NCBI RefSeq assembly: GCF_964194025.1
Contig: NC_134480.1
Span: forward strand, 15,004,001 to 15,068,000
Length of the DNA: 64,000 nucleotides
Direction of reading: 5' to 3'
DNA from: Convolutriloba macropyga
Taxonomy: Eukaryota
The notes beneath the pieces are model-generated. The model worked only from the letters and a program-made list of their open reading frames with translations. It did not search any database and was not told where the DNA came from. Made by a program: the position numbers and the translations under genes. The first letter of the stretch is position 1; every line of letters starts with the position of its first letter. Below are positions 1 to 55,062 of this stretch, in pieces.

Positions 1-660
1 GTTGAATTGAGTCTTGAGCAAGTGCCAGTATGCTTTTATGTTAGTGTGTTTGTTTAATTTGCCTTCAAATTCTTGAATATTTCTTTTTACAACGTTATAC
101 AGTTGTGTCGTTCGTTGGAAGAAATTTTCATCGGATTTGACTAAGCGCTTAATTTTCAGATCACCTCTACAGTGATGCCTTGTTCTCTCGTCTTCGAGGG
201 CTTTAAAACTTTTTGAGAATGTAATACTCATTACAAGTAATAGCTAGGAAGAGAAAAAGATCATGCAGTTCGACGTAGTGACAGAGTGTGAGTAGTTTTA
301 GGCTAATGAGACGTTCTTCGTAAGTTTGAGGTGAATTTCCTAGAATCCATTTAGCGGCCATAATCTGCACTTCAATTTTGTACATGCTGGTGTGGTTTTG
401 CAACCATGCTTGTGAGCAGTACGTCAGTATTGAAACAATAGAACCAGTACAGTACAGCAGTTCATTTTGTTTGATATTGAACTGATTGCAGAGACATTTC
501 GTTTTATTTGGAAAAAAAGCACTAGTTGTTTTTTTGCACTCTGTGCTTGGAGTTTCCTTGCCATGAGAGGTTTGATGTAATTATTAAACCACATAATTAA
601 CCACATACACAAGTCTTGCATCTAGAAAGGAGGCTTCTTCAGTACAAGACATGCCGATAA
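1..660 (-). mobile_element. Decayed CR1/L2-like LINE 3' fragment (copy 1, runs off window start)
   Basis: The minus-strand peptide IEVQIMAAKWIL...TYEERLISLKLLTL resembles the CR1-type ORF2 C-terminal motif (LE.VQ..A.K.I....YEERL..L.L..L). Multiple stops/frameshifts; boundaries approximate. Confidence 0.65.
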
Positions 661-876
661 TATCATGTCTGTTTAATTTTTAATAGCGAATCTTTATTTT
701 AAAAAATGGCACATGCGTCGGGGGGGGGGGTGCAAAAAATATGCACCCACAAAGCTGGGGGCGCAAACAATAATCCCCAAACAATTTGCTTAAACGTCAA
801 CATTTATAGAATCACTTTATAAAGACTAGAAAAGTTTGGTCTTATACTGCTAGTAAATTTAAGTTAACATAATAAC

Positions 877-1263
877 GTTAAAATATTAGTTCAAATATTA
901 ACGTTAAAATATTAATTCAAATAATAATTTTGACTAGTTGAGGAAACATAGGGCAAAAAAACATTTTGTGCATGACAAAACGAAATTTGCAAAACCTCAA
1001 CAAGAAGGATACTTAAGTTTAGGGCAAATTCGGAATAACCCTAAAAATACAAGAACATGGCCAAAATCGAAAAATCCGGAATAGTAATGTTTTTAAATAA
1101 ATTGATAGCGGATGTAAATATGAGTTGTAAATAGGATAAATATTGTACATATGGAATTTTATCTTATAACAATTTGTAAAACAGTTTTAACCTGACGATG
1201 AACGTAAAGTTCGAAAACGTTTGTTTTAAGTAATTTTATTTTGACAAATCGGTTTCTTTTACA
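877..1263 (+). mobile_element. Solo pseudo-LTR of the Penelope-like element
   Basis: Nearly identical to 3497-3883 and similar to 7354-7789. The left flank matches the left flank of the full element and the right flank (gtaaatgtaaggtc) matches its right flank. Confidence 0.85.
1186..1230 (+). ncRNA. Minimal type I hammerhead ribozyme motif (PLE-associated)
   Basis: CTGACGA(1192)-T-GAAC-gtaaa-GTTC-GAAA-ACGT-T-T: conserved core, 4-bp stem II, palindromic AACGTT stem III, short stem I (aac/gtt). Confidence 0.75.
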
Positions 1264-1490
1264 GTAAATGTAAGGTCTAAAAGCTGCACCATTGTCACAA
1301 GTTTAGAATTTGATCTTTTTGCAATTTACTTTCTCCTTAAATTTTATTTTTCGTCTTTGCCGATTTCAATTGTAAGTTGCTCTACTTGAGAAATTTCTGA
1401 TTACTGACTGGTCACTCCATGTAAATTGGCACTTATTTGGGGGGGGGCTGGCCAGAGGCAACTCTTCTCATGCATGTGCCCAATTTTAAG

Positions 1491-2291
1491 GCTAGAATGG
1501 CACCGCCGTCCATTCAGCACGGCATTCCTGCATCAATAGTTGGCAGCAGCAGCGTTGGCAATGCCCCAGCTGTTGAGCAGTTTCTCTACCGAGTGTTCTC
1601 CCCACCAGCTAGCTACCAGTGTGACTCGGTTGAAAATGTTTCCAAGAAGCGCCTCACTCTTGAAACGCTCGAAGGTTATATAGACAAAAGTATGAAAACC
1701 AATGTGAGTCAGCTTGAAAACGAGCACACTTCTGAGGAAGACAATGAAGGCAGAATATGCGGCAATAGTGATCAGTCGGTGTTGTTAGATCGAAAGCTGA
1801 CTCATGGAAACTTCTTTTTTGAGCATGACCAGCTCGGTGTCACGAGTTTATCCAATTTCTCAACAATTACAGCGAATGCTTGTGTTTTCAAAGGTAAATG
1901 GGTGTATGAAGTTATGCTAGGGTCAAAAGGATTGATGCAGATTGGTTGGAGTACTACCAAGTGTGTGTTCTCACCCCAAGAGGGCGTTGGAGATACTCCC
2001 AATTCTTATGCTTACGATGGCAATCGAACTCGGAAATGGAACATGAATACCCAAAAGTACGGCGAATCATGGAGTTCTGGAGACGTAATTTCCTGTACTA
2101 TCGATTGCGACGAGGGTTTAATTGGGTTCTACCGTAATGGCAAAAATTTGGGAGTCGCTTACGATAATATTACCTTGGGTCCAGGTTTTGCATACCTGCC
2201 AGCGATATCGTTGTCCGTTCATGAATCAGTGAGGTTGAATTTTGGATCGAGTCCGCTGAAGTATCCGATCGAAGGCTTTAGACCAATGCAG
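1491..2291 (+). CDS. RNF123: Duplicated RNF123 SPRY-domain exon (copy 1); ATG at 1497
   Basis: Same translation as 8025-8825. SPRY motifs GKWVYEV, MQIGW, GVGDTPNSYAYDG, GDVISC, YLPAISLS. Putative acceptor ttttaag|g at 1490 and donor cag|gtaagt at 2291. Confidence 0.8.
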
Positions 2292-2517
2292 GTAAGTTTC
2301 CGCTCAGTAAAACCAGATTATCTCATGTATATTAATCTTAAGTCTGAAAATTATTGATTGCTCGCGAACGATGTTTGAGCTAATATCTTAAACGTGTCTT
2401 TTCACGACTTGTCCATTTGGCTCAATTTTTTGCCTTGTTATTCTAATTTTGTCTTTTATAGCTGTAAGCTGAGCGGAGCTATATTGCGGTACTCTTGGTT
2501 TTTTACAATTCAAAGAA

Positions 2518-3270
2518 ATTTTGTCAGTCTAGTTTCAGTTGACAAGTTTTTTTGCCAATTTTTACAATTGTCATTTCTGTAAGTTATACGCCAAGAGCAT
2601 TTGTTTGTTAGGGTTGAATTGAGTCTTGAGCAAGTGCCAGTATGCTTTTATGTTAGTGTGTTTGTTTAATTTGCCTTCAAATTCTTGAATATTTCTTTTT
2701 ACAACGTTATACAGTTGTGTCGTTCGTTGGAAGAAATTTTCATCGGATTTGACTAAGCGCTTAATTTTCAGATCACCTCTACAGTGATGCCTTGTTCTCT
2801 CGTCTTCGAGGGCTTTAAAACTTTTTGAGAGTGTAATACTCATTACAAGTAATAGCTAGGAAGAGAAAAAGATCATGCAGTTCGACGTAGTGACAGAGTG
2901 TGAGTAGTTTTAGGCTAATGAGACGTTCTTCGTAAGTTTGAGGTGAATTTCCTAGAATCCATTTAGCGGCCATAATCTGCACTTCAATTTTGTACATGCT
3001 GGTGTGGTTTTGCAACCATGCTTGTGAGCAGTACGTCAGTATTGAAACAATAGAACCAGTACAGTACAGCAGTTCATTTTGTTTGATATTGAACTGATTG
3101 CAGAGACATTTCGTTTTATTTGGAAAAAAAGCACTAGTTGTTTTTTTGCACTCTGTGCTTGGAGTTTCCTTGCCATGAGAGGTTTGATGTAATTATTAAA
3201 CCACATAATTAACCACATACACAAGTCTTGCATCTAGAAAGGAGGCTTCTTCAGTACAAGACATGCCGAT
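2518..3270 (-). mobile_element. Decayed CR1/L2-like LINE 3' fragment (copy 2)
   Basis: Same sequence as 1-660 at offset 2612. Confidence 0.65.
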
Positions 3271-3805
3271 AATATCATGTCTGTTTATAATTTTTAATAG
3301 CGAATCTTTATTTTAAAAAATGGCACATGCGTCGGGGGGGGGGGGGGGGGTGCAAAAAATATGCACCCACAAAGCTGGGGGCGCAAACAATAATCCCCAA
3401 ACAATTTGCTTAAACGTCAACATTTATAGAATCACTTTATAAAGACTAGAAAAGTTTGGTCTTATACTGCTAGTAAATTTAAGTTAACATAATAACGTTA
3501 AAATATTAGTTCAAATATTAACGTTAAAATATTAATTCAAATAATAATTTTGACTAGTTGAGGAAACATAGGGCAAAAAAACATTTTGTGCATGACAAAA
3601 CGAAATTTGCAAAACCTCAACAAGAAGGATACTTAAGTTTAGGGCAAATTCGGAATAACCCTAAAAATACAAGAACATGGCCAAAATCGAAAAATCCGGA
3701 ATAGTAATGTTTTTAAATAAATTGATAGCGGATGTAAATATGAGTTGTAAATAGGATAAATATTGTACATATGGAATTTTATCTTATAACAATTTGTAAA
3801 ACAGT

Positions 3806-3850
3806 TTTAACCTGACGATGAACTTAGAGTTCGAAAACTTTTGTTTTAAG
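3806..3850 (+). ncRNA. Hammerhead ribozyme motif in 5' pLTR (stem III palindrome mutated)
   Basis: CTGACGA(3812)-T-GAACT-tag-AGTTC-GAAA-ACTT-T-T. Stem II is preserved despite loop changes. Confidence 0.65.
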
Positions 3851-4003
3851 TAATTTTAATTTGACAAATCGGTTTCTTTTACATTATTTACTTTGTCAAA
3901 TATTTTGAAATCAAGGCCTAAAGAAGGGCTAATTGCAAAATACTTTGAGAAGTTTTCAGTGTTTTAGTGTTTTAGCGAGTATGAATTTTATAGATTTACA
4001 GAG

Positions 4004-4654
4004 ATGGTGCAAATTCTGGCTGCATGTTCGCTTCTAAATAGTCTCCCATATTCAAGCAAAAAACAGTTTTTAGGGAAAATTACATCGGTTCCCGGACTCT
4101 CCTTCAACAGAAATTCCAAAGACTGGGTCAAAAACGCAAGGAATCTTCTTCAGAAGGGTCACCTGAGCAAGCGGAAAGACTTGGTAGTGTGGCACGACAT
4201 GATAAATAACACAATCTCACATCACATTTCAAACAACTACCAACCCCGCAGCGTGCTGGAGTTGACACCGTTTCTTAGAACGAACAGAGACCGCTTCAGT
4301 GCGATTGTTTACCGTCAACGTATAGGCACAGAGGATATTTTTGAGGAGCTGCTGAAGTCTGAGGTACTGGCGCTAAGCGTAACCAAGCACCTGATTTCGA
4401 AGAGAAAGTGGAAGACGCAGCCAGGAAAGTATTCCCAGCTGCATCAGGAGGCTGGGTTGGAGATTAGGACCCTGGAGACAGTATTACGCCATCAGTACAA
4501 TTTAAGAGGGCTGCTCAAGAAAGGAAAAGGCAAGAACTGGGGCAAAAGGCAGAGGAAAGCGAGAGCCAAGGCAAAGATGGTGCAACAGACACACACTGAG
4601 GAGGAACTCCTGAACAATCGGGTTTCATTGCCCCCTGTCCTTGAGCTTCTTTGA
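4004..4654 (+). CDS. PLE upstream ORF, 216 aa, degenerate SGNH/GDSL-hydrolase-like fold with basic tail
   Basis: Open ORF inside the PLE. Spaced blocks ILAACSLL / SVPGLSF / DLVVWHDMINN / SQLHQEAG match the order of SGNH blocks I, II, III, V. K/R-rich C-terminus. Confidence 0.5.
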   Translation: MVQILAACSLLNSLPYSSKKQFLGKITSVPGLSFNRNSKDWVKNARNLLQKGHLSKRKDLVVWHDMINNTISHHISNNYQPRSVLELTPFLRTNRDRFSAIVYRQRIGTEDIFEELLKSEVLALSVTKHLISKRKWKTQPGKYSQLHQEAGLEIRTLETVLRHQYNLRGLLKKGKGKNWGKRQRKARAKAKMVQQTHTEEELLNNRVSLPPVLELL

Positions 4655-4657
4655 GGT

Positions 4658-7366
4658 ATGTGGTTAATGCTAGCAAAGACGTGGCTCAGGTATATTTTGA
4701 AAAGATCAAAATGTTACAAATTTTATCTTGATTACTTGAAAACCCTAAATAAGGTCACTAGCTGCAATTACGGACTTGACTTTTTAAAAGAATGCCTTAA
4801 CAATGATATGATTTCGGATTTTTTGAGGTTTCGCGCTCCTAAAAAAGAAATTTTTTCTAAACAAGCGTTGCACAGTTTTCAATTAAAGCTCTTGAAACAG
4901 GAAATAAACCGTGCGGAGAAAAGCCGTAAAGTGTTAAGGGAAAAACTTGAGTCAGATAGCAGTAATATTATGGAGAACGTGAGACCAGAACTGATGAATC
5001 CGTTGTTGGCAGCATTAGGCGTGAAATGAGGAACCACTCCGCAATGGTTAAAAATATTAATTCAAATGATAATTTTGACTAGTTGAGGAAACATAGGGCA
5101 AAAAACATTTTGTGCTTGACAAAACGAAATTTACAGAACCTCCACAAGAGGGATATTTATGTTTAGGGCACTTATTGGAAAACTTGATAAACTGTCAGAT
5201 AGACAGGATAGACCACTGCGGAATGGCTCCCATAGTAATGTTGTGATAATGGATGGCCGTGAACTTCCAAAGTTTGTACTTGACATCTTATCATTTGGAC
5301 CTAAACACCATGTGAGGGACAAGTTTGTTGAGGTGCACTTCCTTGCAGACGTAGACCCACTTGTAAGGGAGTTACGCGAGAATAAAACCGAGGGTGAGAA
5401 GCTTTGTGTAATTGACCGTCCGCAAAATGGTATGCAAAAAATGTACGCAAAAACCCAATGGATAGAGGGGTCAAAAAGATGCATGATTACCTAAAAGCCA
5501 ATGATTTGCTGGCGGAACCATTTGATAAAGGCTGCGGTTTCTGTGTGATGAAGAAGTCAACGTACATGGAAAAACTTGATGAGGTGCTGAACTCAGATCA
5601 GTTCCAAAAAATCAATGATCAAAAGATGATCGTGTGATCAAAAATGAAAAATAGATCAATAACAGCCTGCAACAATTAATGAAGCAAGGGAAAATTAGTG
5701 ACAAAATTTATCAAAGACTCAGGTCAACAGTTTCACAACCAGCGAGGCTTTATGGTCTGGCAAAATTACATAAAAAAGATAATCTCCGACCTGCTCTTTC
5801 GATGCCTGGTAGCATCTACGGAAACTTAAACAGATTTCTGACACCATTTTTCCAGAAACTACCGCGCAAACATTGAAACCAACACGCAAGAGGCTTGAAA
5901 GACCTTAGAGTCTCTCTTTCTTGAAGATGACGAGCAGATAGTATCTCTTGACGTAAAAAGTGTGTAGACCAACGTTCCGGTTGGAGAGGCTATAGAAATT
6001 GCTCTAAGAGAACTCTATTCAAGCAACGTAGCTCCAGATATCCCAAGATCCGTCATAAAAAATTTGCTAAAGCTTGCGGTGACGAATGTTCGTTTCAATG
6101 TGATGGCATTTGGTATGTACAATCAGATGTTCTGGCTATGAGTGCATCACTGGCTGTAATACTAGCAAACGTGTGGATGAAATCGTTTGAGGCATCACTG
6201 CAAAAACCAGAGCTCAATGAAAACATTTCCAGATCCGACCAAAACCGGAAGTGCAAAGACTTTAATCTGAGAGTGACTTTCCCAGGAAGAGGAGTAAAAT
6301 GTGAGTCATGCAAAAACTGGTTTCACGGAAGATGCCAAAGGATATCGAATGAGGAATACGCCAACATGCAGGATGATGTTTGCATTTGTACTTATTGTAA
6401 CAACCAACAGATAGTGGGGCGTTATGAGGAGATGAAATTGTTTAAAAGATATGTGGATGTTATTATATGCACGGCTCGTGGTGACCCGGACGAGTATTTA
6501 AATATTGCAAATTCTTTACACAACAACCTGCAATTTACCTTAGAAAGTTAACATGGAAGGGAATTTGGCTTTTTCTTGACATTAACGTAAATGTGAGCAG
6601 CAAAAGTAATATCACCTATCACAGGTATCAAAAACCAACTGACTATGGAATAATACTGAATTTTCGCAGCTTTGCACCGCTTCAGCATAAGAAAAATGTG
6701 ATTCAAGGGACGGTTCATAGGGTTTTTAATGCAACCTCTAATTGATTGGCATTCGATCAGGCTCTCGAAAAGAACAAAACTTGCTGGACCAAAAATCAAT
6801 ATGCAGAAGATTGGTCTTCAAAAATAGTGAACCAGACTCTAGAAAAGATAATAAGTGGCGGTAAAGACCAATTGAGAACAACACCAAAAGAGCAGCAAAA
6901 AAGCAAGACTAGATCCTATGATAAGCCAACTATTTTTCTACAATACAGAGGCAACCTTACTCAAAACTTTGCAAGCAAATTGAAGAACTTATGCGAATTG
7001 CAAGTGGTTTTTACAACGCGGAAATTAAGATCATGCCCCCCCACCCTGAAATCATCTTTAGATAGAGACCTGAAATCCCACGTGGTATATGAGATTAAAG
7101 CTAATGGATGCGGATCCATCTATGTTGGGCAAACAAGCCAGCATGTTACCACAAGGATAACAGAACATCAAAAGAAGGATTCACAGGTGGGTCAACATCT
7201 GGTTGAATGTCGTGGTGCCACGAATGACATTGAATGGAAAATTCTGGACGCCTGTCGGACGGTAGAAAAACTAATGATTATCGAAGCTATATACATCAGC
7301 AAGCTGAAGCCGGCACTGAACACACGCGATGAATATAGGGGGCGGGAGCTCAGGTTAAAATATTAG
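4658..7366 (+). pseudogene. PLE RT-(PHD)-GIY-YIG polyprotein, disrupted by stops, frameshifts and a pLTR-derived insertion
   Basis: ORF-track fragments 4658-5029, 5159-5494, 5679-5876, 6138-6551 and 6746-7366 give collinear PLE motifs. Catalytic YVDD is mutated to YVDV. Confidence 0.9.
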
Positions 7367-7711
7367 TTCAAATTATAATTTTGACTAGATGAGGAAACAT
7401 AGGGCAAAAAACATGTGCAAGAGAAAACGAAATTTGCAAAACCTCCACAAGAGGGATACTTAAGTTTAGGGCAAATTCGGAATAACCCTAAAAATACAAG
7501 AACATGGGCAAAATCGAAAAATCCGGAATAGGAATGTTTTTAAATAAATTGATAACGGATGTAAATATGAGTTGTAAATAGGCTAAATATTGTACATATG
7601 GAAAAATTTTCGATTGAATTTTTTAGAATTGTTCCCAGAATTGTTTTAAGTGGGGTCTCAGACAAATGTAAATACATATTTATTTTATCTTTTAACAATT
7701 TGTAAAACAGT

Positions 7712-7756
7712 TTTAACCTGACGATGAACGTAAAGTTCGAAAACGTTTGTTTTAAG
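7712..7756 (+). ncRNA. Minimal hammerhead ribozyme motif in 3' pLTR
   Basis: CTGACGA(7718)-T-GAAC-gtaaa-GTTC-GAAA-ACGT-T-T, identical to the 1192 copy. Confidence 0.75.
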
Positions 7757-8030
7757 TAATTTTATTTTGACAAATCGGTTTCTTTTACAGTAAATGTAAG
7801 GTCTAAAAGCTGCACCATTGTCACAAGTTTAGAATTTGATCTTTTTGCAATTTACTTTCTCCTTAAATTTTATTTTTCGTCTTTGCCGATTTCAATTGTA
7901 AGTTGCTCTACTTGAGAAATTTCTGATTACTGACTGGTCACTCCATGTAAATTGGCACTTATTTGGGGGGGGGGGGGGGGGCTGGCCAGAGGCAACTCTT
8001 CTCATGCATGTGCCCAATTTTAAGGCTAGA

Positions 8031-8825
8031 ATGGCACCGCCGTCCATTCAGCACGGCATTCCTGCATCAATAGTTGGCAGCAGCAGCGTTGGCAATGCCC
8101 CAGCTGTTGAGCAGTTTCTCTACCGAGTGTTCTCCCCACCAGCTAGCTACCAGTGTGACTCGGTTGAAAATGTTTCCAAGAAGCGCCTCACTCTTGAAAC
8201 GCTCGAAGGTTATATAGACAAAAGTATGAAAACCAATGTGAGTCAGCTTGAAAACGAGCACACTTCTGAGGAAGACAATGAAGGCAGAATATGCGGCAAT
8301 AGTGATCAGTCGGTGTTGTTAGATCGAAAGCTGACTCATGGAAACTTCTTTTTTGAGCATGACCAGCTCGGTGTCACGAGTTTATCCAATTTCTCAACAA
8401 TTACAGCGAATGCTTGTGTTTTCAAAGGTAAATGGGTGTATGAAGTTATGCTAGGGTCAAAAGGATTGATGCAGATTGGTTGGAGTACTACCAAGTGTGT
8501 GTTCTCACCCCAAGAGGGCGTTGGAGATACTCCCAATTCTTATGCTTACGATGGCAATCGAACTCGGAAATGGAACATGAATACCCAAAAGTACGGCGAA
8601 TCATGGAGTTCTGGAGACGTAATTTCCTGTACTATCGATTGCGACGAGGGTTTAATTGGGTTCTACCGTAATGGCAAAAATTTGGGAGTCGCTTACGATA
8701 ATATTACCTTGGGTCCAGGTTTTGCATACCTGCCAGCGATATCGTTGTCCGTTCATGAATCAGTGAGGTTGAATTTTGGATCGAGTCCGCTGAAGTATCC
8801 GATCGAAGGCTTTAGACCAATGCAG
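8031..8825 (+). CDS. RNF123: RNF123/KPC1 coding exon 1 (SPRY domain)
   Basis: SPRY domain; ends ...YPIEGFRPMQ|gtaagt, phase 0. Joins exon 2 to give RPMQ|DPP, like RNF123 RPLQDPP. Alternative ATG at 8004. Confidence 0.9.
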
Positions 8826-8890
8826 GTAAGTTTCCGCTCAGTAAAACCAGATTATCTCATGTATATTAATCTTAAGTCTGAAAATTATTG

Positions 8891-11800
8891 ATTGCTCGCG
8901 AACGATGTTTGAGCTAATATCTTAAACGTGTCTTTTCACGACTTGTCCATTTGGCTCAATTTTTTGCCTTGTTATTCTAATTTTGTCTTTTATAGCTGTA
9001 AGCTGAGCGGAGCTATATTGCGGTACTCTTGGTTTTTTACAATTCAAAGAATGAATTGTATTGGGGGGCTTTTTTTAAGATCTGTTCACACATTTTCATG
9101 ATTTTTGAAGTCAAATTGGAGTAGTGATTTTGGTCACGCCGAAACAGGAAATGAAGCGAAAAAGCGAGCGGTTTTTGCTCTTATTTTTAAGTCGAGTGAA
9201 AAACGGTGTTTGAACAAAAGTTCGCTTTCTCGCTAATGGTTTTTTGTTCACATGCGGCAATTTCACTTTGGTTTTTACTGTTTTTCGAATTGTTTGGATC
9301 GGATTTTTTCTAAATAGTTTTCCCAAGTCATTCATAGTTCATTCTAGGCCTAGTTTTTTGTTAGAATCAAATTTTCATTTCTCGTTAGTGATTTTTTTTG
9401 TTCTCGCTAGCGTCTTTTTGACATTGATTTTCTGTTTGTATTTTGTTTTTTTTTATCTGATTTTTTTAGAAAAGGTTTTGCCAATTCACTCATAGTCCGT
9501 CCTAGGTCTAGTTTTTTGTTTATTCGATGCAAATTCTTTGAATTGTGCGTTAGGACTTGTCCTGCTATATTTTTTTGTTTCTTCGTCTGACGCTCTTTTT
9601 CGTTTTACATTTGTTAACACAGCAAAGCTGAAAAAGTCAAACTTTTTGTATAACTTCTTCCGCTCACTAACGGTATTTGCGCGCGTGACGTCTTTTCTCA
9701 GTATCTTTAGCAAAAGTTTTTTGCGTGATTAGATTTTGATCGTAAGTGGCTTACCTCACTCAATAAAATGACTTTTGCACTTTAAAACTTAAGTTTAATT
9801 TGAATTTGTTTAAGGTCAAAGGGACTCATGCGCAGTAAAGGCCCCTAATAAAAGGCTTCCGCGGGATGAATTTTAACAAGCTTTATGAATTTATCGCTGA
9901 ATGTTTTTTTACCTAGCTCTGAGCGGCGTCGATTTTTTTTTAATTTAGGTCTGCATCTTTTTCTATCTCTATTGTACGGCCCGCAGGTCTATTCTTTCGC
10001 AGCTATTCCGGCAATGTTCTTTTGTTTTCTAAATAAATTCTTTATTTTTCTAACTTTGAGAAGTTTGTTTTGTAAAAAGTGTAAAGGGCAACGCCACTTG
10101 GATAATTATTGCGTTGAATTCCTGTTATTGACATGAGTTGTTTTTGTTTCTATAAAATCTATACTTAAATTAATCCGATTTTGGCGGTTCATTTTTTAGT
10201 TTTTGTATTTTGGTTTGATTTACTAGAACATGAATTTTTCTGCACCGTCTGGGATCTCTAATTTGTGTTATTGATAATCAGGTATTTCTTGGGTTGAATG
10301 TTTGATGATTGGTGTCAAATAAGAATTGAAATGGCTAACTAAATATTTGTTTGGGCATTTTTGGCAAATATTTCTTTGGCTGATTGAGTTCTGTTTTTAC
10401 TGTTTTATTGTGACAGGAGGAGTTTTATGCCATTGTACTAAGCCTCCAATGCTAACTAATTTAATACAATTGTGTTTAATAGCCTCGAAGCAATAGAGGC
10501 TATTATTGGGGACATCGTGGTTTTTACAATTCAAAGAATTTGAATTGTATTGGTGTGCTGTCTTTTTAATATTTTTTCACTCTTTTTTCGACTTTTCCAC
10601 GTCTGTGAGAAGTCAAATTAATATGTTGATTTTGGTCGCACTGAAACAGTAAAGGGAGTGAAAAATTGAGTAAGTTTTTCAAAATACCTTTAAAGTGGAG
10701 TGAGAAAATGGTGTTTGGACAATTTGCGGTTTTTGAGACGGATTTTTCTTCAGGTGCGTCAATTTGACTTCTGTTTTCAGTGTTTCCTCTCCTTCAGTGC
10801 TTTTAGAACGTTAGATATGTGTTCCAATTGTGCATGTTTGCCTTTGCTCAAATGCTTTTAGGGGCAGCTAAAATTTTTTATGACTTTGCCACTATTTGTT
10901 GTCATAAAATTTTAGTGAAATTTAGATTTTGCCACCTTTTTAAAATTATCTGTTGTCTTTTCATTAGTATCATCAATGACATGTCTGATTTGTTGTTAAT
11001 GAGGCATAAAAGAACCTGAATAATGGCTTCAGTTAATAGCTAGTGGTTTTCCTGACTTTGACACTACTTTTTCTCAAAAATGTTGAGTGAGTTTTTGAGT
11101 TCTGCAAGTATATATTGTACTTTTTGATGTCTTATCATTTAATCTCACTATGGACAGGTCTCTGATGCTGCTAATAGGGTAAAGTATATCGATTTAATTG
11201 TTTTTCTTCAAAGCTAGTGCTTTCTATGACTTTGACCCTAACTGTTTTTGATAATATCGAATTTTTCGAGTTTTGCAAGTTTTTCTTTTTAACTGGTCTT
11301 GTTAACTTAGTCTCATTGTCGACAGTTCTCAATGGTTGCTAGAAAGGTTTCAATTTAAGCAAGTCATTTCAGTTCTTAGCTGTCACTTTTTGTGACATAT
11401 ACGCTTGCTCGTTCTTTAAAAATATTAATGATTTTTTAAGTTTTGCTAGTATTTGTTGTACTTATTGCTGTCTTATCACTTAATCTCATTGATGACAGTT
11501 CTCAACGGTGGTTATTGAGGACTCAATTAATTGATGTAATTGTATACTTCAGTAGCTGTTGCATTCTGTGACTTTTATACTAAGTGTTTTCAAAAAGTTT
11601 CAGCAAGTTTTATTGCGGTTTATGGTTATTTTTGTCTTATTAAACAGTGAAGGGAGCGAAAAATCGAGTAGGGGTGAGGCTTGAATTTTTTCAAAGTACC
11701 TTTAAATTGGCGTGAGAAGTTGGTTATTGATTAATTGGGCGGTTTTTTCAGATGGATTTTTTTTCAGTTTGTCAATTTGACTTCTGTTTTCAGAGTTCCT

Positions 11801-14800
11801 CTCCTTCAGTGCTTTTAAGACGGTACATATGTGTTCTAATTGTGCCTGTTTTCCTTTGCTCGAATGCATTAAGGGGCATCTAAAATTTTTAATGATATCC
11901 CACTATTTGTTGTCATAAAATTTTAGTGAATTTTAGATTTTGCCATCTTTTTAAAATTATCGGTTGTCTTATCACTAGTATTATCAATGACATGTCTTGA
12001 TTTGTTGCTAATGAGGCATAAAAGAACTTGTTTAATGGCTTCAGTTAATAGCTAGTGGTTTTCATGAATTCTGCGAGTATTTATTGTACTTTTTGATGTG
12101 TTATCATTTAATCTCACTGATGACAGTTCGCAACGGGGGTCCTTGAGGACTCAATTACTTGATGTGATTGTATCTTTCAGTAGCTGTTGTGTTCTGTGAC
12201 TTTTATACCAAGCGTGATCAAAAAGTATCGGCAATTTCACTTTGGTTTTTACTGTTTTTTGAATTGTTTGGATCGGATTTTTTTCTAAATAGTTTTCCCA
12301 AGTCATTCATAGTTCATTCTTGGCCTATTTTTTTGTTAGAATAAATTTTCTTTTCTCGCTAGTGATTTTTTTTGTTCTCGCTAGCGTCATTTTGACATTG
12401 ATTTTCTGGTTTTTAAAATTTTTATCTGATTTTTTTTAGAAAAGGTTTTTCCCAATTCACTCAGTCCGTCCTAGGTCTAGTTTTTTGTTTAGTCAATGAA
12501 AATTCTTTGAATTGTACGTTAAGATTTGTCCTGCTATATTTTTTCTTTCTTCGTCTGACGCTCTTTTTTGTTTTACATTTGTTCACACAGCAAAGCTGAA
12601 AAAGTCAAACTTTTTGTATAACTTCTTCCGCTCACTAACGGTATTTGCGCGCGTGACGTCTTTTCTCAGTATGTTTAGCAAAAGTGTTTTGCGTGATTAG
12701 ATTTTTATCGCAAGTGACTTACCTCACTCAATAAAATGACTTTTGCACTTTAAAACTTAAGTTTAATTTTAATTTGTTTGAGGTCAAAGGGACTCATGTG
12801 CAGTAAAGACCCCTAATAAAAGCCTTCTGCGGGATGAATTTTAACAAGCTTTATGAATTTTAACAAGCTTTATGAATTTATCTCTTTTAACAAGCTTTAT
12901 GAATTTAACAAGCTTTATGAATTTGTCTCTATAATTTTAACAAGCTTTTTGAATTTATCTCTAATTTTAACAAGCTTTATGAATTTAAGAACAAGCTTTA
13001 TAAATTTATGAATTTATCTCTTATGTTTTTTACCTAGCTCTTTGAGCGGCGTCGAATTTTTTAAAATTTAGATCTGCCTCTTTTTCTATCTCTATTGTAC
13101 GGCCCGCAGGTCTTTTCTTTCGCAGCTATTCCGGCAATATGCCGGCATTGTTTTTTTGTTTTCTAAATAAATTCTTTATTTTTCTAACTTTGAGCAGTCT
13201 GTTTTATAAAAGTGTATAGGGCAACGCCACTTGGATAATTCTTGCGTTGAATTCCTGTTATTGACATGAGTTGTTTTTGTTTCTATAAAATCTATACTTA
13301 AATTAATCCAATTTTGGCGGTTCATTGTTTAGTTTTTGTTGTATTTTGGTTTGATTTACTCGAACACGAATTTCTCTGCACCGTCTGGGATCTCTAATTT
13401 GTGTTATTGATAATTCAGGTATTTCTTGGGTTGAATGTTTGATGATTGGTGTCAAATAAGAATTGAAATGGCTAACTAAATATTTGTTTGGGCATTTTTG
13501 GCAAATATTTCTTTGGCTGATTGAGTTCTGTTTTTACTGTTTTATTGTGACAGGAGGAGTTTTATGCCATTGTACAAAGCCTCCAATGCTAAATAATTTG
13601 ATACAATTGTGTTTAATAGCCTCGAAGCAATAGAGGCTATTATTGGGGACATGTGGTTTTTACAATGCAAAGAATTTGAATTGTATAGATGTGCTGTCTT
13701 TTCAAGATCATTTCACGCTTTTTTCGATTTTTTCACGTCCATGAGAAGTCAAATTAATGTGTTGATTTTGGTCGAACTGAAACAGTAAAGGGAGAAAAAA
13801 TATTGAGTAGATTTTTCCAAATACCTTTAAAGTGGAGTGAGAAAATGGTGTTTGAACAATTTGCGGTTTTTGAGACGGATTTTTCTTCAAGTGCGTCAAT
13901 TTGACTTCTGTTTTCAGTGTTTCCTTTCCTTCAGTGCTTTTAAGACGTTAGATATGTGTTCTAATTGTGGATGTTTGCCTTTGCTCGAATGCATATAGGG
14001 GCATCTAAAATTTTTTATGACTGCCACTATTTTTTGTCATAAAATATTAGTGAATTTAAGATTTTGCCATCTTTTTAAAAATTATCTGTTGTCTTATCAC
14101 TAGTATCTTCAATGACATGTCTGATTTGTTGCTAATGAGGCATAAAAGAACTTGTTTAATGGCTTCAGTTAATAGCTAGTGGTTTTCATGACTTTGACAC
14201 TACTTTTTCTCAAAAATATTGTGAGTTTTTGAGTTCTGCAAGTATATTTTGTACTTTTTGATGTCTTGTCATTTAATCTCATTATGGACAGGTCTCTGAT
14301 GCTGCTAATTGGGTTAAGTTATCGATTTAATTGTTTTTGTTTAAAGCTTGTGCTTTCTATGACTTTGACCCTAACTGTTTTTGATAATATCGAATTTTTC
14401 GAGTTTTGCAAGTTTTCTTTTCAACTGGTCTTCTTAACTTAGTTTCATTATCAACGCTTCTCAATGGTTGCTAGAAAGGTTTCAATTTAAGCAAGTCATT
14501 TCAGTTCTTAGCTGTCACTTTTTGTGACTTATACGCTTGTTCATTCTTTAAAAATCTCAATGATTTTTTTAGTTTTGCTAGTATTTGTTGTACTTATTGC
14601 TGTCTTATTACTTAATCTCATTGATGACAGTTCTCAGTGGTGGTTATTGAGGTCTCAATTAATTGATGTAATTGTATCCTTCAGTAGCTGTTGCGTTCTG
14701 TGATTTTTTTATGCTAAGTGTTCTCAAAAAGTTTCAGCGAGTTTTATTGCGGTTTATGGTTATTTTTGTCTTATGAAACAGTAAAGGGAGCAAAAAATCG

Positions 14801-54760: not shown

Positions 54761-55062
54761 ACGCTAAATTTAACGCAAATTTATGTATGACCAACGCTAT
54801 ATTCAACGCAAAATTATGTAAAATCTACGCTAAATTCAACGCAAACTTATTTAAGATCTACGCTAAATTCAACGCAAACTTATTTAAGATCTACGCTAAA
54901 TTCAACGCAAACTTATTTAAGATCTACGCTAAATTCAACGCAAACTTATTTAAGATCTACGCTAAATTCAACGCAAACTTATTTAAGATCTACGCTAAAT
55001 TTAACGCAAACTTATTTAAGATCTACGCTAAATTTAACGCGAAATTATGCAAGATCCACGCT
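54761..55062 (+). repeat. 33-bp minisatellite, 9 copies
   Basis: Unit acgctaaattcaacgcaaacttatttaagatct at an exact 33-bp period; explains the spurious ORF 54787-55107. Confidence 0.95.

Follow-up and report, generated by a model that had tools for sequence, protein, structure and literature searches.

The 64,000-nucleotide stretch of Convolutriloba macropyga DNA analysed here (the window; contig NC_134480.1, positions 15,004,001 to 15,068,000, forward strand) carries a Penelope-like element (PLE) flanked by pseudo-long terminal repeats (pLTRs) at 3523-7792 on the plus strand, as found by reading the letters in three frames and by self-comparison. The element, a canonical Penelope-like retrotransposon, is present here as a dead copy. 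Between motifs B and C, in the catalytic core of its reverse transcriptase (RT), it holds an in-frame insert which, based on profile searches and structure models, is a PHD finger: a predicted zinc-binding, autonomous module of about 50 amino acids (aa) carried on two fast-evolving linkers. Alignments and a phylogenetic tree of relatives indicate that a deep PLE clade acquired the finger a single time, at its base, and then kept it.

In the window copy, the open reading frame (ORF) 6138-6551 is a single open frame leading from motif B (AMSASLAVILANVWMKSFE) through a Cys/His module to motif C. A first-pass annotation, made from the letters of this DNA alone, had placed an in-frame PHD finger between these two motifs, and the frame is indeed uninterrupted. 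The module at 6252-6398 reads CKDF-x12-CESC-KNWF-H-GRC-x15-CICTYC, followed by FKRYVDV; on the Pfam PHD model (PF00628) it scores 19.8 bits (E 8e-4) against a cut-off of 24, and is thus below threshold. A DNA alignment with L002, a 91% identical copy in a public assembly that matches window 5170-7790, gives four telling differences: ligand 2 (6261-6263) is Phe TTT in the window and Cys TGT in L002; the residue before ligand 7 is Cys TGC in the window and the conserved Trp TGG in L002; motif C has Val GTT (YVDV) in place of Asp GAT (YVDD); and motif B has Ser AGT (AMS) in place of Gly GGT (AMG). The earlier proposals that the Phe codon and the YVDV motif each lie one base from the intact state are borne out by this comparison. 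L002 and the protein P0183, which represents the window's own family (708 aa, from a cluster of 104 members), have YVDD, AMG and a complete C4HC3 PHD above the Pfam threshold.

The insert is a family feature. An exhaustive phmmer search with the 137-aa ORF as query against 1.84 billion representatives matched 233 proteins at E at or below 1e-3 and 55 at E at or below 1e-10, many of them over the full query and at 28-66% identity. The aligned matches share motif B, a C-x2-C ... C-x2-C-x2-W-[FY]-H-x2-C ... W-x-C-x(1,2)-C module and YxDD. A second search, with a longer relative as query, recovered intact ORFs of 826-891 aa (P0181, P0187, P0188, P0189 and P0193), and PHD-bearing clusters at 90% identity contain 242 and 104 members. 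The PHD-bearing PLE proteins that were looked up all come from ENA assemblies, none from NCBI or UniRef, and a look-up in the ESM Atlas returned generic PLE clusters, all of them without a PHD.

One regular-expression definition, applied to every protein fetched, served to measure how far YxDD lies from the end of motif B. This distance is exactly 16 aa in all 80 PLE RTs without a PHD, in line with the earlier claim that this spacer is normally short (the same claim had counted about 83 aa in the window copy), and 78-104 aa in 48 insert-bearing relatives. The full C4HC3 pattern is present in 39 of the 48, and the B-PHD-C arrangement that was to be looked for in other PLE RTs does exist there; of the other nine, P0282 included, most are plainly translated pseudogenes in which one ligand is lost. 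P0282 belongs to the PHD-less clade, and has an unrelated 91-aa insert with no Pfam domain in the same B-C loop, which suggests that the site is permissive and has been used more than once. In the relatives, the RVT_1 match stops after motif B, just before the finger. While the window copy itself is sub-threshold in the profile search that had been proposed for it, six relatives pass the PF00628 gathering score of 24 bits: P0183 (27.2), P0167 (26.6), P0181 (26.4), P0187 (32.7), P0162 (26.2) and P0173 (24.4).

A maximum-likelihood tree was calculated from 84 RT sequences with the insert columns removed and the root left open. The PHD-bearing rows, 40 in all, are separated from all PHD-less rows, P0282 included, by a branch with 100% support in the approximate likelihood ratio test (SH-aLRT), the PHD-less sample consisting of the nearest database neighbours of the query. 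Because the terminal branches on the PHD-bearing side reach 0.7-0.9 changes per site, we consider the clade to be old. Constraint was gauged by domain-wise identity, synonymous sites being saturated between families and decay being neutral within them. In the PHD-bearing set, the mean pairwise identity is 0.39 for the PHD core, 0.18-0.19 for the two flanking linkers and 0.49-0.57 for the RT and endonuclease (EN) domains, a pattern that marks a module under constraint, held by loose tethers. Since the eight zinc ligands and two core Trp residues are kept in intact, highly repeated ORFs, we take the finger to be a functional component of the enzyme. At the same time, all 80 relatives without the insert indicate that the palm does not need the finger, and that it is dispensable for the fold.

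To place the finger among known PHDs, we searched a profile of 26 non-identical fingers against the PDB sequences. These 26 were selected for the full eight-ligand pattern, so that ligand invariance among them is by construction, while the counts for Trp and pocket-floor residues given below are not. The Pygopus PHD came first (E 3e-11 to 2e-10), followed by Alfin-like, MLL1 PHD3, KAT6A, MLL3/4, BPTF (~2e-6), DIDO, PHF2/8 and TAF3; the precomputed Pfam annotation of the relatives likewise includes PF27108, PHD_Pygo. An AlphaFold2 model of the P0183 finger (mean predicted local distance difference test score, pLDDT, 91) matched the Pygo1 PHD with a template-modelling (TM) score of 0.90 and a root-mean-square deviation of 1.0 Å, compared to TM ~0.76 for MLL3 PHD6 and Alfin-like 1, and ~0.73 for BPTF. 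In a full-length model of P0181 the finger has pLDDT 85-92, and its N-side linker 63-79. The finger had at first been likened to the BPTF-type, H3K4me3-reading PHD. The direction of that claim was right, as BPTF is a significant match that shares C4HC3 and a Trp two residues before the His; the nearest match, however, is Pygopus, and on profile and model alike the closest solved relative is the Pygopus PHD finger, ahead of BPTF. BPTF uses a full aromatic cage (PMC2726290), while the aromatic wall positions are not conserved in the PLE fingers, and Pygo, Alfin-like and MLL PHD3 all score better.

The likeness to the Pygopus PHD (human PYGO1/2 and fly Pygo; PDB 2vpe, 2dx8, 4up0 and 3zpv), the best match in both profile and fold, extends to the Trp of W-F/Y-H that divides the pockets, the EVND-loop Val, a long, helix-containing loop2 and a Trp preceding the last pair of ligands (the W390 equivalent, 25/26 fingers). 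The differences are equally clear. Identity is ~28%, the PLE fingers lack the EVND motif, and conservation does not extend to Y341 and D352; ligands 3-4 are spaced C-x2-C compared to C-x3-C in Pygo, loop2 is three residues shorter, and many members end in C-x-C. The PLE finger also lies within an enzyme, whereas the Pygo finger is at the C-terminus of a Wnt co-activator. Of the marks that define Pygo, the EVND Val is kept in 22/26 PLE fingers and the Asp in 2/26; the A378 equivalent is Glu in 19/26, the T375 equivalent Ser/Thr in 22/26 and the L382 equivalent Met, Ile or Leu in 17/26. By these EVND and BCL9-HD1 contact marks, the PLE finger resembles the Pygo PHD without being a member of that family; it may possibly descend from a Pygopus gene of the host.

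PHD fingers usually grip histone tails. The finger described here belongs to the sequence and fold neighbourhood of the H3K4me-reading PHDs, and we used the residues forming the Pygo1 pockets as described by Fiedler et al. 2008 (PMC2726290) to map the PLE family. The W366 equivalent, which divides the pockets, is Trp in 26/26 fingers; on the floor of the K4 pocket, the V350 equivalent is Val in 22/26 and the A356 equivalent a small residue in 24/26; and the I357 equivalent in the T3 pocket is Val or Ile in 22/26. The H3-tail groove is thus plausibly kept, as far as residue conservation can tell. The methyl-state preference is not callable from the sequence, and may differ between subclades. 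Because the A1/R2/T3 groove and the K4 floor are conserved while the residues that set the methyl state are not, we do not commit to H3K4me3.

Based on this, the explanation that we favour, at somewhat better than an even chance, is that the finger is exposed outside the palm and binds the H3 tail. It would project from the outer side of the palm, bind the N-terminal tail of histone H3, and hold the RT-EN-RNA particle (the ribonucleoprotein) on the nucleosome during nicking by the GIY-YIG endonuclease and target-primed reverse transcription; this hold on the nucleosome would then bias the site at which the element integrates. A more ambitious version is that a deep clade of animal PLEs took up a Pygopus-like H3 reader within the polymerase palm, possibly from host Pygopus, and so coupled target-primed reverse transcription to the H3K4-methylation state, with integration steered to active promoters or enhancers. 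From the sequences at hand we think this rather improbable.

Several observations weigh against an H3-tail reader that guides integration. The walls of the K4 cage vary: the Y341 equivalent is aromatic in only 5/26 fingers and Gly in the window's family, while the D352 equivalent is aromatic in 10/26, acidic in 2/26 and Tyr in the window's family; the E360 equivalent, a contact for A1/R2, is acidic in 13/26. The first-pass suggestion that the finger tethers the enzyme to H3K4-marked chromatin is unsupported here, given the variation at the two cage-wall positions. In addition, a large subclade ends in C-x-C and not C-x2-C, and two of its members, P0188 and P0189, gave no Pfam PHD match at E 0.01. 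It is from anatomy that we infer the finger to face away from the template cleft. The preference otherwise reported for PLEs is for microsatellites, (TA)n for example, as targets (PMC8557442), and the sole positional evidence for promoter targeting is a single insertion event, described further below.

The finger could also be a protein-protein adaptor for a non-histone partner, either a host factor or a subunit encoded by the element, and not read chromatin at all. The partner might be held on the loop2 surface, as Pygopus holds BCL9 HD1, or by its free N-terminus, as in the PHF2 PHD. It is in accordance with this that the closest relative, the Pygopus PHD, binds BCL9 HD1 by its rear surface (PMC2726290), and that the fold matches include the PHF2 PHD in complex with an N-terminal peptide of VRK1. 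The varying cage walls would fit as well, as would loop2, where the M374/T375-equivalent positions are hydrophobic then Ser/Thr in most fingers and W390 is retained. This loop2 pattern, however, is common to many PHDs; the A378 contact for HD1, invariant in Pygo, is mostly Glu, the loop is three residues shorter than that of Pygo, and the residues lining the H3 groove are better conserved. We therefore consider an adaptor role unlikely. Less probable still, in our view, is that the finger serves the polymerase itself as a zinc module, either structural or in contact with nucleic acids, which would brace the palm, grip RNA/DNA or gate catalysis. The placement between two catalytic motifs speaks for it, as do the Lys/Arg-rich surroundings of the finger in the family and a predicted helix (533-542, pLDDT ~85 in the P0181 model) that leads on the C-side into the motif C strand; the unrelated insert tolerated by P0282 in the same loop likewise argues for a site that accepts varied accessory modules. 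All 80 PHD-less relatives nonetheless work with a 16-aa loop, the fast linkers and the low-confidence N-side linker are as expected for a tethered and not a packed module, and the closest domains of known structure are readers of histone tails and do not belong to the nucleic-acid binders.

There is, finally, the view that the Cys/His pattern is a one-off capture or a chance arrangement in a decayed pseudogene, without any function. The window copy is dead and falls below the Pfam PHD cut-off, as such a pattern might; yet the 233 database matches, many of them spanning B-PHD-C, the single deep clade with its fully supported split, the intact high-copy ORFs, the relatives above the Pfam cut-off and the confident PHD fold leave this view with next to no chance of being correct. 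Family-wide retention, the tree, the Pfam scores and the fold model together refute it, and the 48 insert-bearing relatives settle in the negative the earlier concern that other copies might lack the insert.

The assignment to the PLEs is supported throughout the element. The DKG motif (PFDKGCGFCVM, ~5518-5550) is nearly invariant in the family alignment, RVT_1 is above the Pfam cut-off in P0183 and P0181, and GIY-YIG scores 25.8 bits in P0183, also above the cut-off. The full-length P0181 model is of high quality (pLDDT 90, predicted TM score 0.82), and its top PDB fold matches are TERT structures (3du5 and 6usr). In the window copy, RT motifs A, B and C are recognisable yet broken. The element thus shares with the canonical PLEs of the C-terminal-EN type (Penelope/Poseidon) the DKG motif, a TERT-like RT, pLTRs, inverted copy pairs as well as a GIY-YIG EN at the C-terminus, with Cys/His around the GIY-YIG core, and no CX2-5CxxC linker finger was seen. 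It differs from them in the ~60-90 aa PHD-holding insert between RT4(B) and RT5(C). A hammerhead ribozyme is usual in the pLTRs of canonical PLEs; none was detected in this decayed copy by a search with Rfam models, in which neither 1-12000 (E limit 0.1) nor 7300-7850 (E limit 10) gave a match.

Features of the Penelope-like element in the window, with the evidence or remark for each.
Feature	Position	Strand	Evidence or remark
Upstream pLTR (R2)	3523-3886	+	Direct repeat of the element 3' end; self-BLAST and alignment
5' part of the PLE body, including ORF 4004-4654	3887-4657	+	Flanked by R2 and the PLE ORF start
N-terminal coding part of the PLE ORF, coiled-coil-like/helical	4658-5029	+	tblastn and alignment
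Copy (~120 bp) of the pLTR start inside the coding region, breaks the ORF	5051-5170	+	89-93% identity
Conserved N-terminal motifs with DKG (PFDKGCGFCVM; DKG at 5524-5532)	5159-5637	+	Frame reading and alignment
RT fingers and motif A (SLDVKSV*TNVP, 5944-5979)	5640-6096	+	Frame reading
RT motif B (QSDVLAMSASLAVILANVWMKSFE)	6120-6191	+	AMS here, AMG in intact relatives
N-side linker of the PHD, fast-evolving	6192-6251	+	Identity 0.19; pLDDT 63-79 in the P0181 model
PHD finger, decayed C4HC3	6252-6398	+	Pfam, DNA comparison with L002, fold model
C-side linker of the PHD, into the motif C strand	6399-6449	+	Mean pairwise identity 0.18
RT motif C, YVDV (YVDD in L002/P0183)	6450-6461	+	DNA alignment
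RT motifs D-E, thumb and linker	6552-7078	+	Frame change at ~6550; stop at 6743-6745
C-terminal GIY-YIG EN up to the ORF stop codon	7079-7366	+	Pfam
Downstream pLTR / 3' untranslated region (R3), element 3' end	7354-7792	+	Self-comparison; end of similarity to L002

The body of the PLE (3887-7353, ~3.47 kb) lies between the two direct repeats; self-BLAST aligns 3523-3776 with 7354-7603 at 94%, and 3766-3886 with 7673-7792. Such a pLTR arrangement is typical of PLEs (PMC8557442). The downstream pLTR has an extra 70 bp at 7604-7672, missing from both upstream pLTR copies. We place the 3' end of the element at ~7792, because similarity to L002 (up to 7790) and to the other pLTR copies stops there. 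ORF 4004-4654 encodes 216 aa and shares the frame of the PLE ORF, a single TGA intervening; a Pfam search with it gave no domain match, and as similarity to L002 starts only at window 4823, 3' of this ORF, we regard it as no more than a putative part of the family. Residues 7-211 of P0181 align to window 4715-5452 by tblastn, and the C-terminal half of the window copy aligns with P0183 residues 416-708 at 84% identity. The short pLTR-like piece within the coding region resembles 906-1026, 3526-3646 and 7353-7473, and is not found in L002. The PLE ORF has undergone at least five frame changes, near 5400-5450, 5640, 5877, 6093 and 6550, and its in-frame stops include those at 5896, 5965 and 6743; the GIY-YIG domain is nevertheless detectable by Pfam on window 6746-7363 (26.1 bits, cut-off 22.6).

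Two observations outside this copy concern its relatives. In L003, two PHD-bearing PLE copies stand head to head, at 2747-4936 on the minus strand and 5001-7580 on the plus strand, 64 bp apart, which is the inverted arrangement described for PLEs. At 54782-55061, the window has a tandem repeat with a ~33 bp period that is 71-74% identical to L002:2929-3077. Together with the 91% identity of the elements, this repeat likeness suggests that L002 stems from this species or from one closely related to it.

Downstream of the element, the ATG at 8004 opens an ORF with a SPRY domain (Pfam E 6.5e-27), whose best PDB sequence matches are the SPRY domains of RyR and DDX1, in a PDB that holds no RNF123 sequence. 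The first-pass annotation had this copy end ~235 bp upstream of the first coding exon of RNF123; the distance measured from the element's 3' end to the ATG of the SPRY ORF is 212 bp, close to that estimate. The junction between pLTR and flank beside the SPRY exon is present twice (903-2517 vs 7354-9051; 1146-2517 vs 7673-9051 at 99.1%), and as both junctions are identical, they represent one insertion event. The hint of promoter targeting consequently carries essentially no weight, and the RNF123-promoter argument is unsupported as well, chance proximity being expected.

The locus around the element occurs twice within window 1-9051. The first unit consists of a segment U (1-902), a solo pLTR (903-1266) and flank (1267-2517), and the second of U' (2613-3522), pLTR (3523-3886), body, pLTR (7354-7792) and flank (7793-9051). 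Segments 1-1266 and 2613-3886 are 98.9% identical, and the SPRY exon is duplicated (~1477-2364 and 8004-8891); upstream of the SPRY ORF, a poly-G tract has ~17 G at 7966-7982 and 8 G at 1441-1448. The duplication could have arisen by tandem duplication followed by pLTR-pLTR recombination, or could represent two haplotypes that were placed in tandem by the assembler.

The first-pass annotation knew of no chromatin reader embedded in an RT palm. That view does not hold, since PLEs with a PHD in the RT core have been described: five Chlamys PLE families of Chlamydomonas carry PHD insertions, either in the interval from RT2a to RT3(A) or within the EN, where they separate the H and E residues (Craig et al. 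2021, PMC8557442). A PLE RT that contains a chromatin-type finger thus has a precedent in kind. The Chlamys proteins, like ours, have the PHD in frame within the PLE polyprotein, in some cases in the RT core, where it is read as a chromatin-related accessory domain. They differ in that theirs have an N-terminal EN and are from the green lineage, in five families of one genus, while the PLE described here is of the canonical C-terminal-EN type, uses the B-C loop as its site, and has a finger that defines a deep clade. In the literature searched, where Craig et al. 2021 was the one relevant paper, we found no account that places a PHD in the RT4(B) to RT5(C) interval or in canonical animal-type PLEs, although an earlier description is possible.

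Craig et al. 2021 (PMC8557442) also cite PHDs in CR1 and Rehavkus elements. The PHD in ORF1 of CR1-like elements of the non-LTR type (Kapitonov and Jurka 2003, as cited in PMC8557442) is comparable to ours as a reader on a retroelement protein that is thought to guide integration. What differs is the position, as such readers are terminal or in a separate ORF, whereas the reader described here interrupts the polymerase between catalytic motifs. The same comparison applies to the chromodomain of chromoviral integrases, a histone-tail reader on a retroelement protein that is likewise thought to guide integration. Lineage-specific insertions in surface loops of the RT fold are also familiar, among them the '4a' insertion between RT4 and RT5 in some non-LTR and group II intron RTs, and the RT4-RT5 gap is a known variable spot. 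The insertion in the fingers domain (IFD) of TERT and Naiad lies between motifs A and B (PMC8557442). Both of these are polymerase-specific elaborations and not an autonomous zinc-finger reader.

To our knowledge, no PLE RT structure has been solved, and the target choice of PLEs is poorly understood. The algal Chlamys elements have already provided examples of PHD inserts in PLE RTs, and the function of the finger is here inferred only; should the more ambitious version given above be true and the targeting role be shown, this would be the first RT whose catalytic core carries its own chromatin-mark reader. The conserved, autonomous reader-type finger tethered in the B-C loop offers a direct experimental handle on PLE target choice. 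The RT4-RT5 loop tolerates the insertion of an entire folded domain with activity retained, as it does an unrelated insert in P0282, and this tolerance is of practical interest for RT-based insertion tools with added targeting modules.

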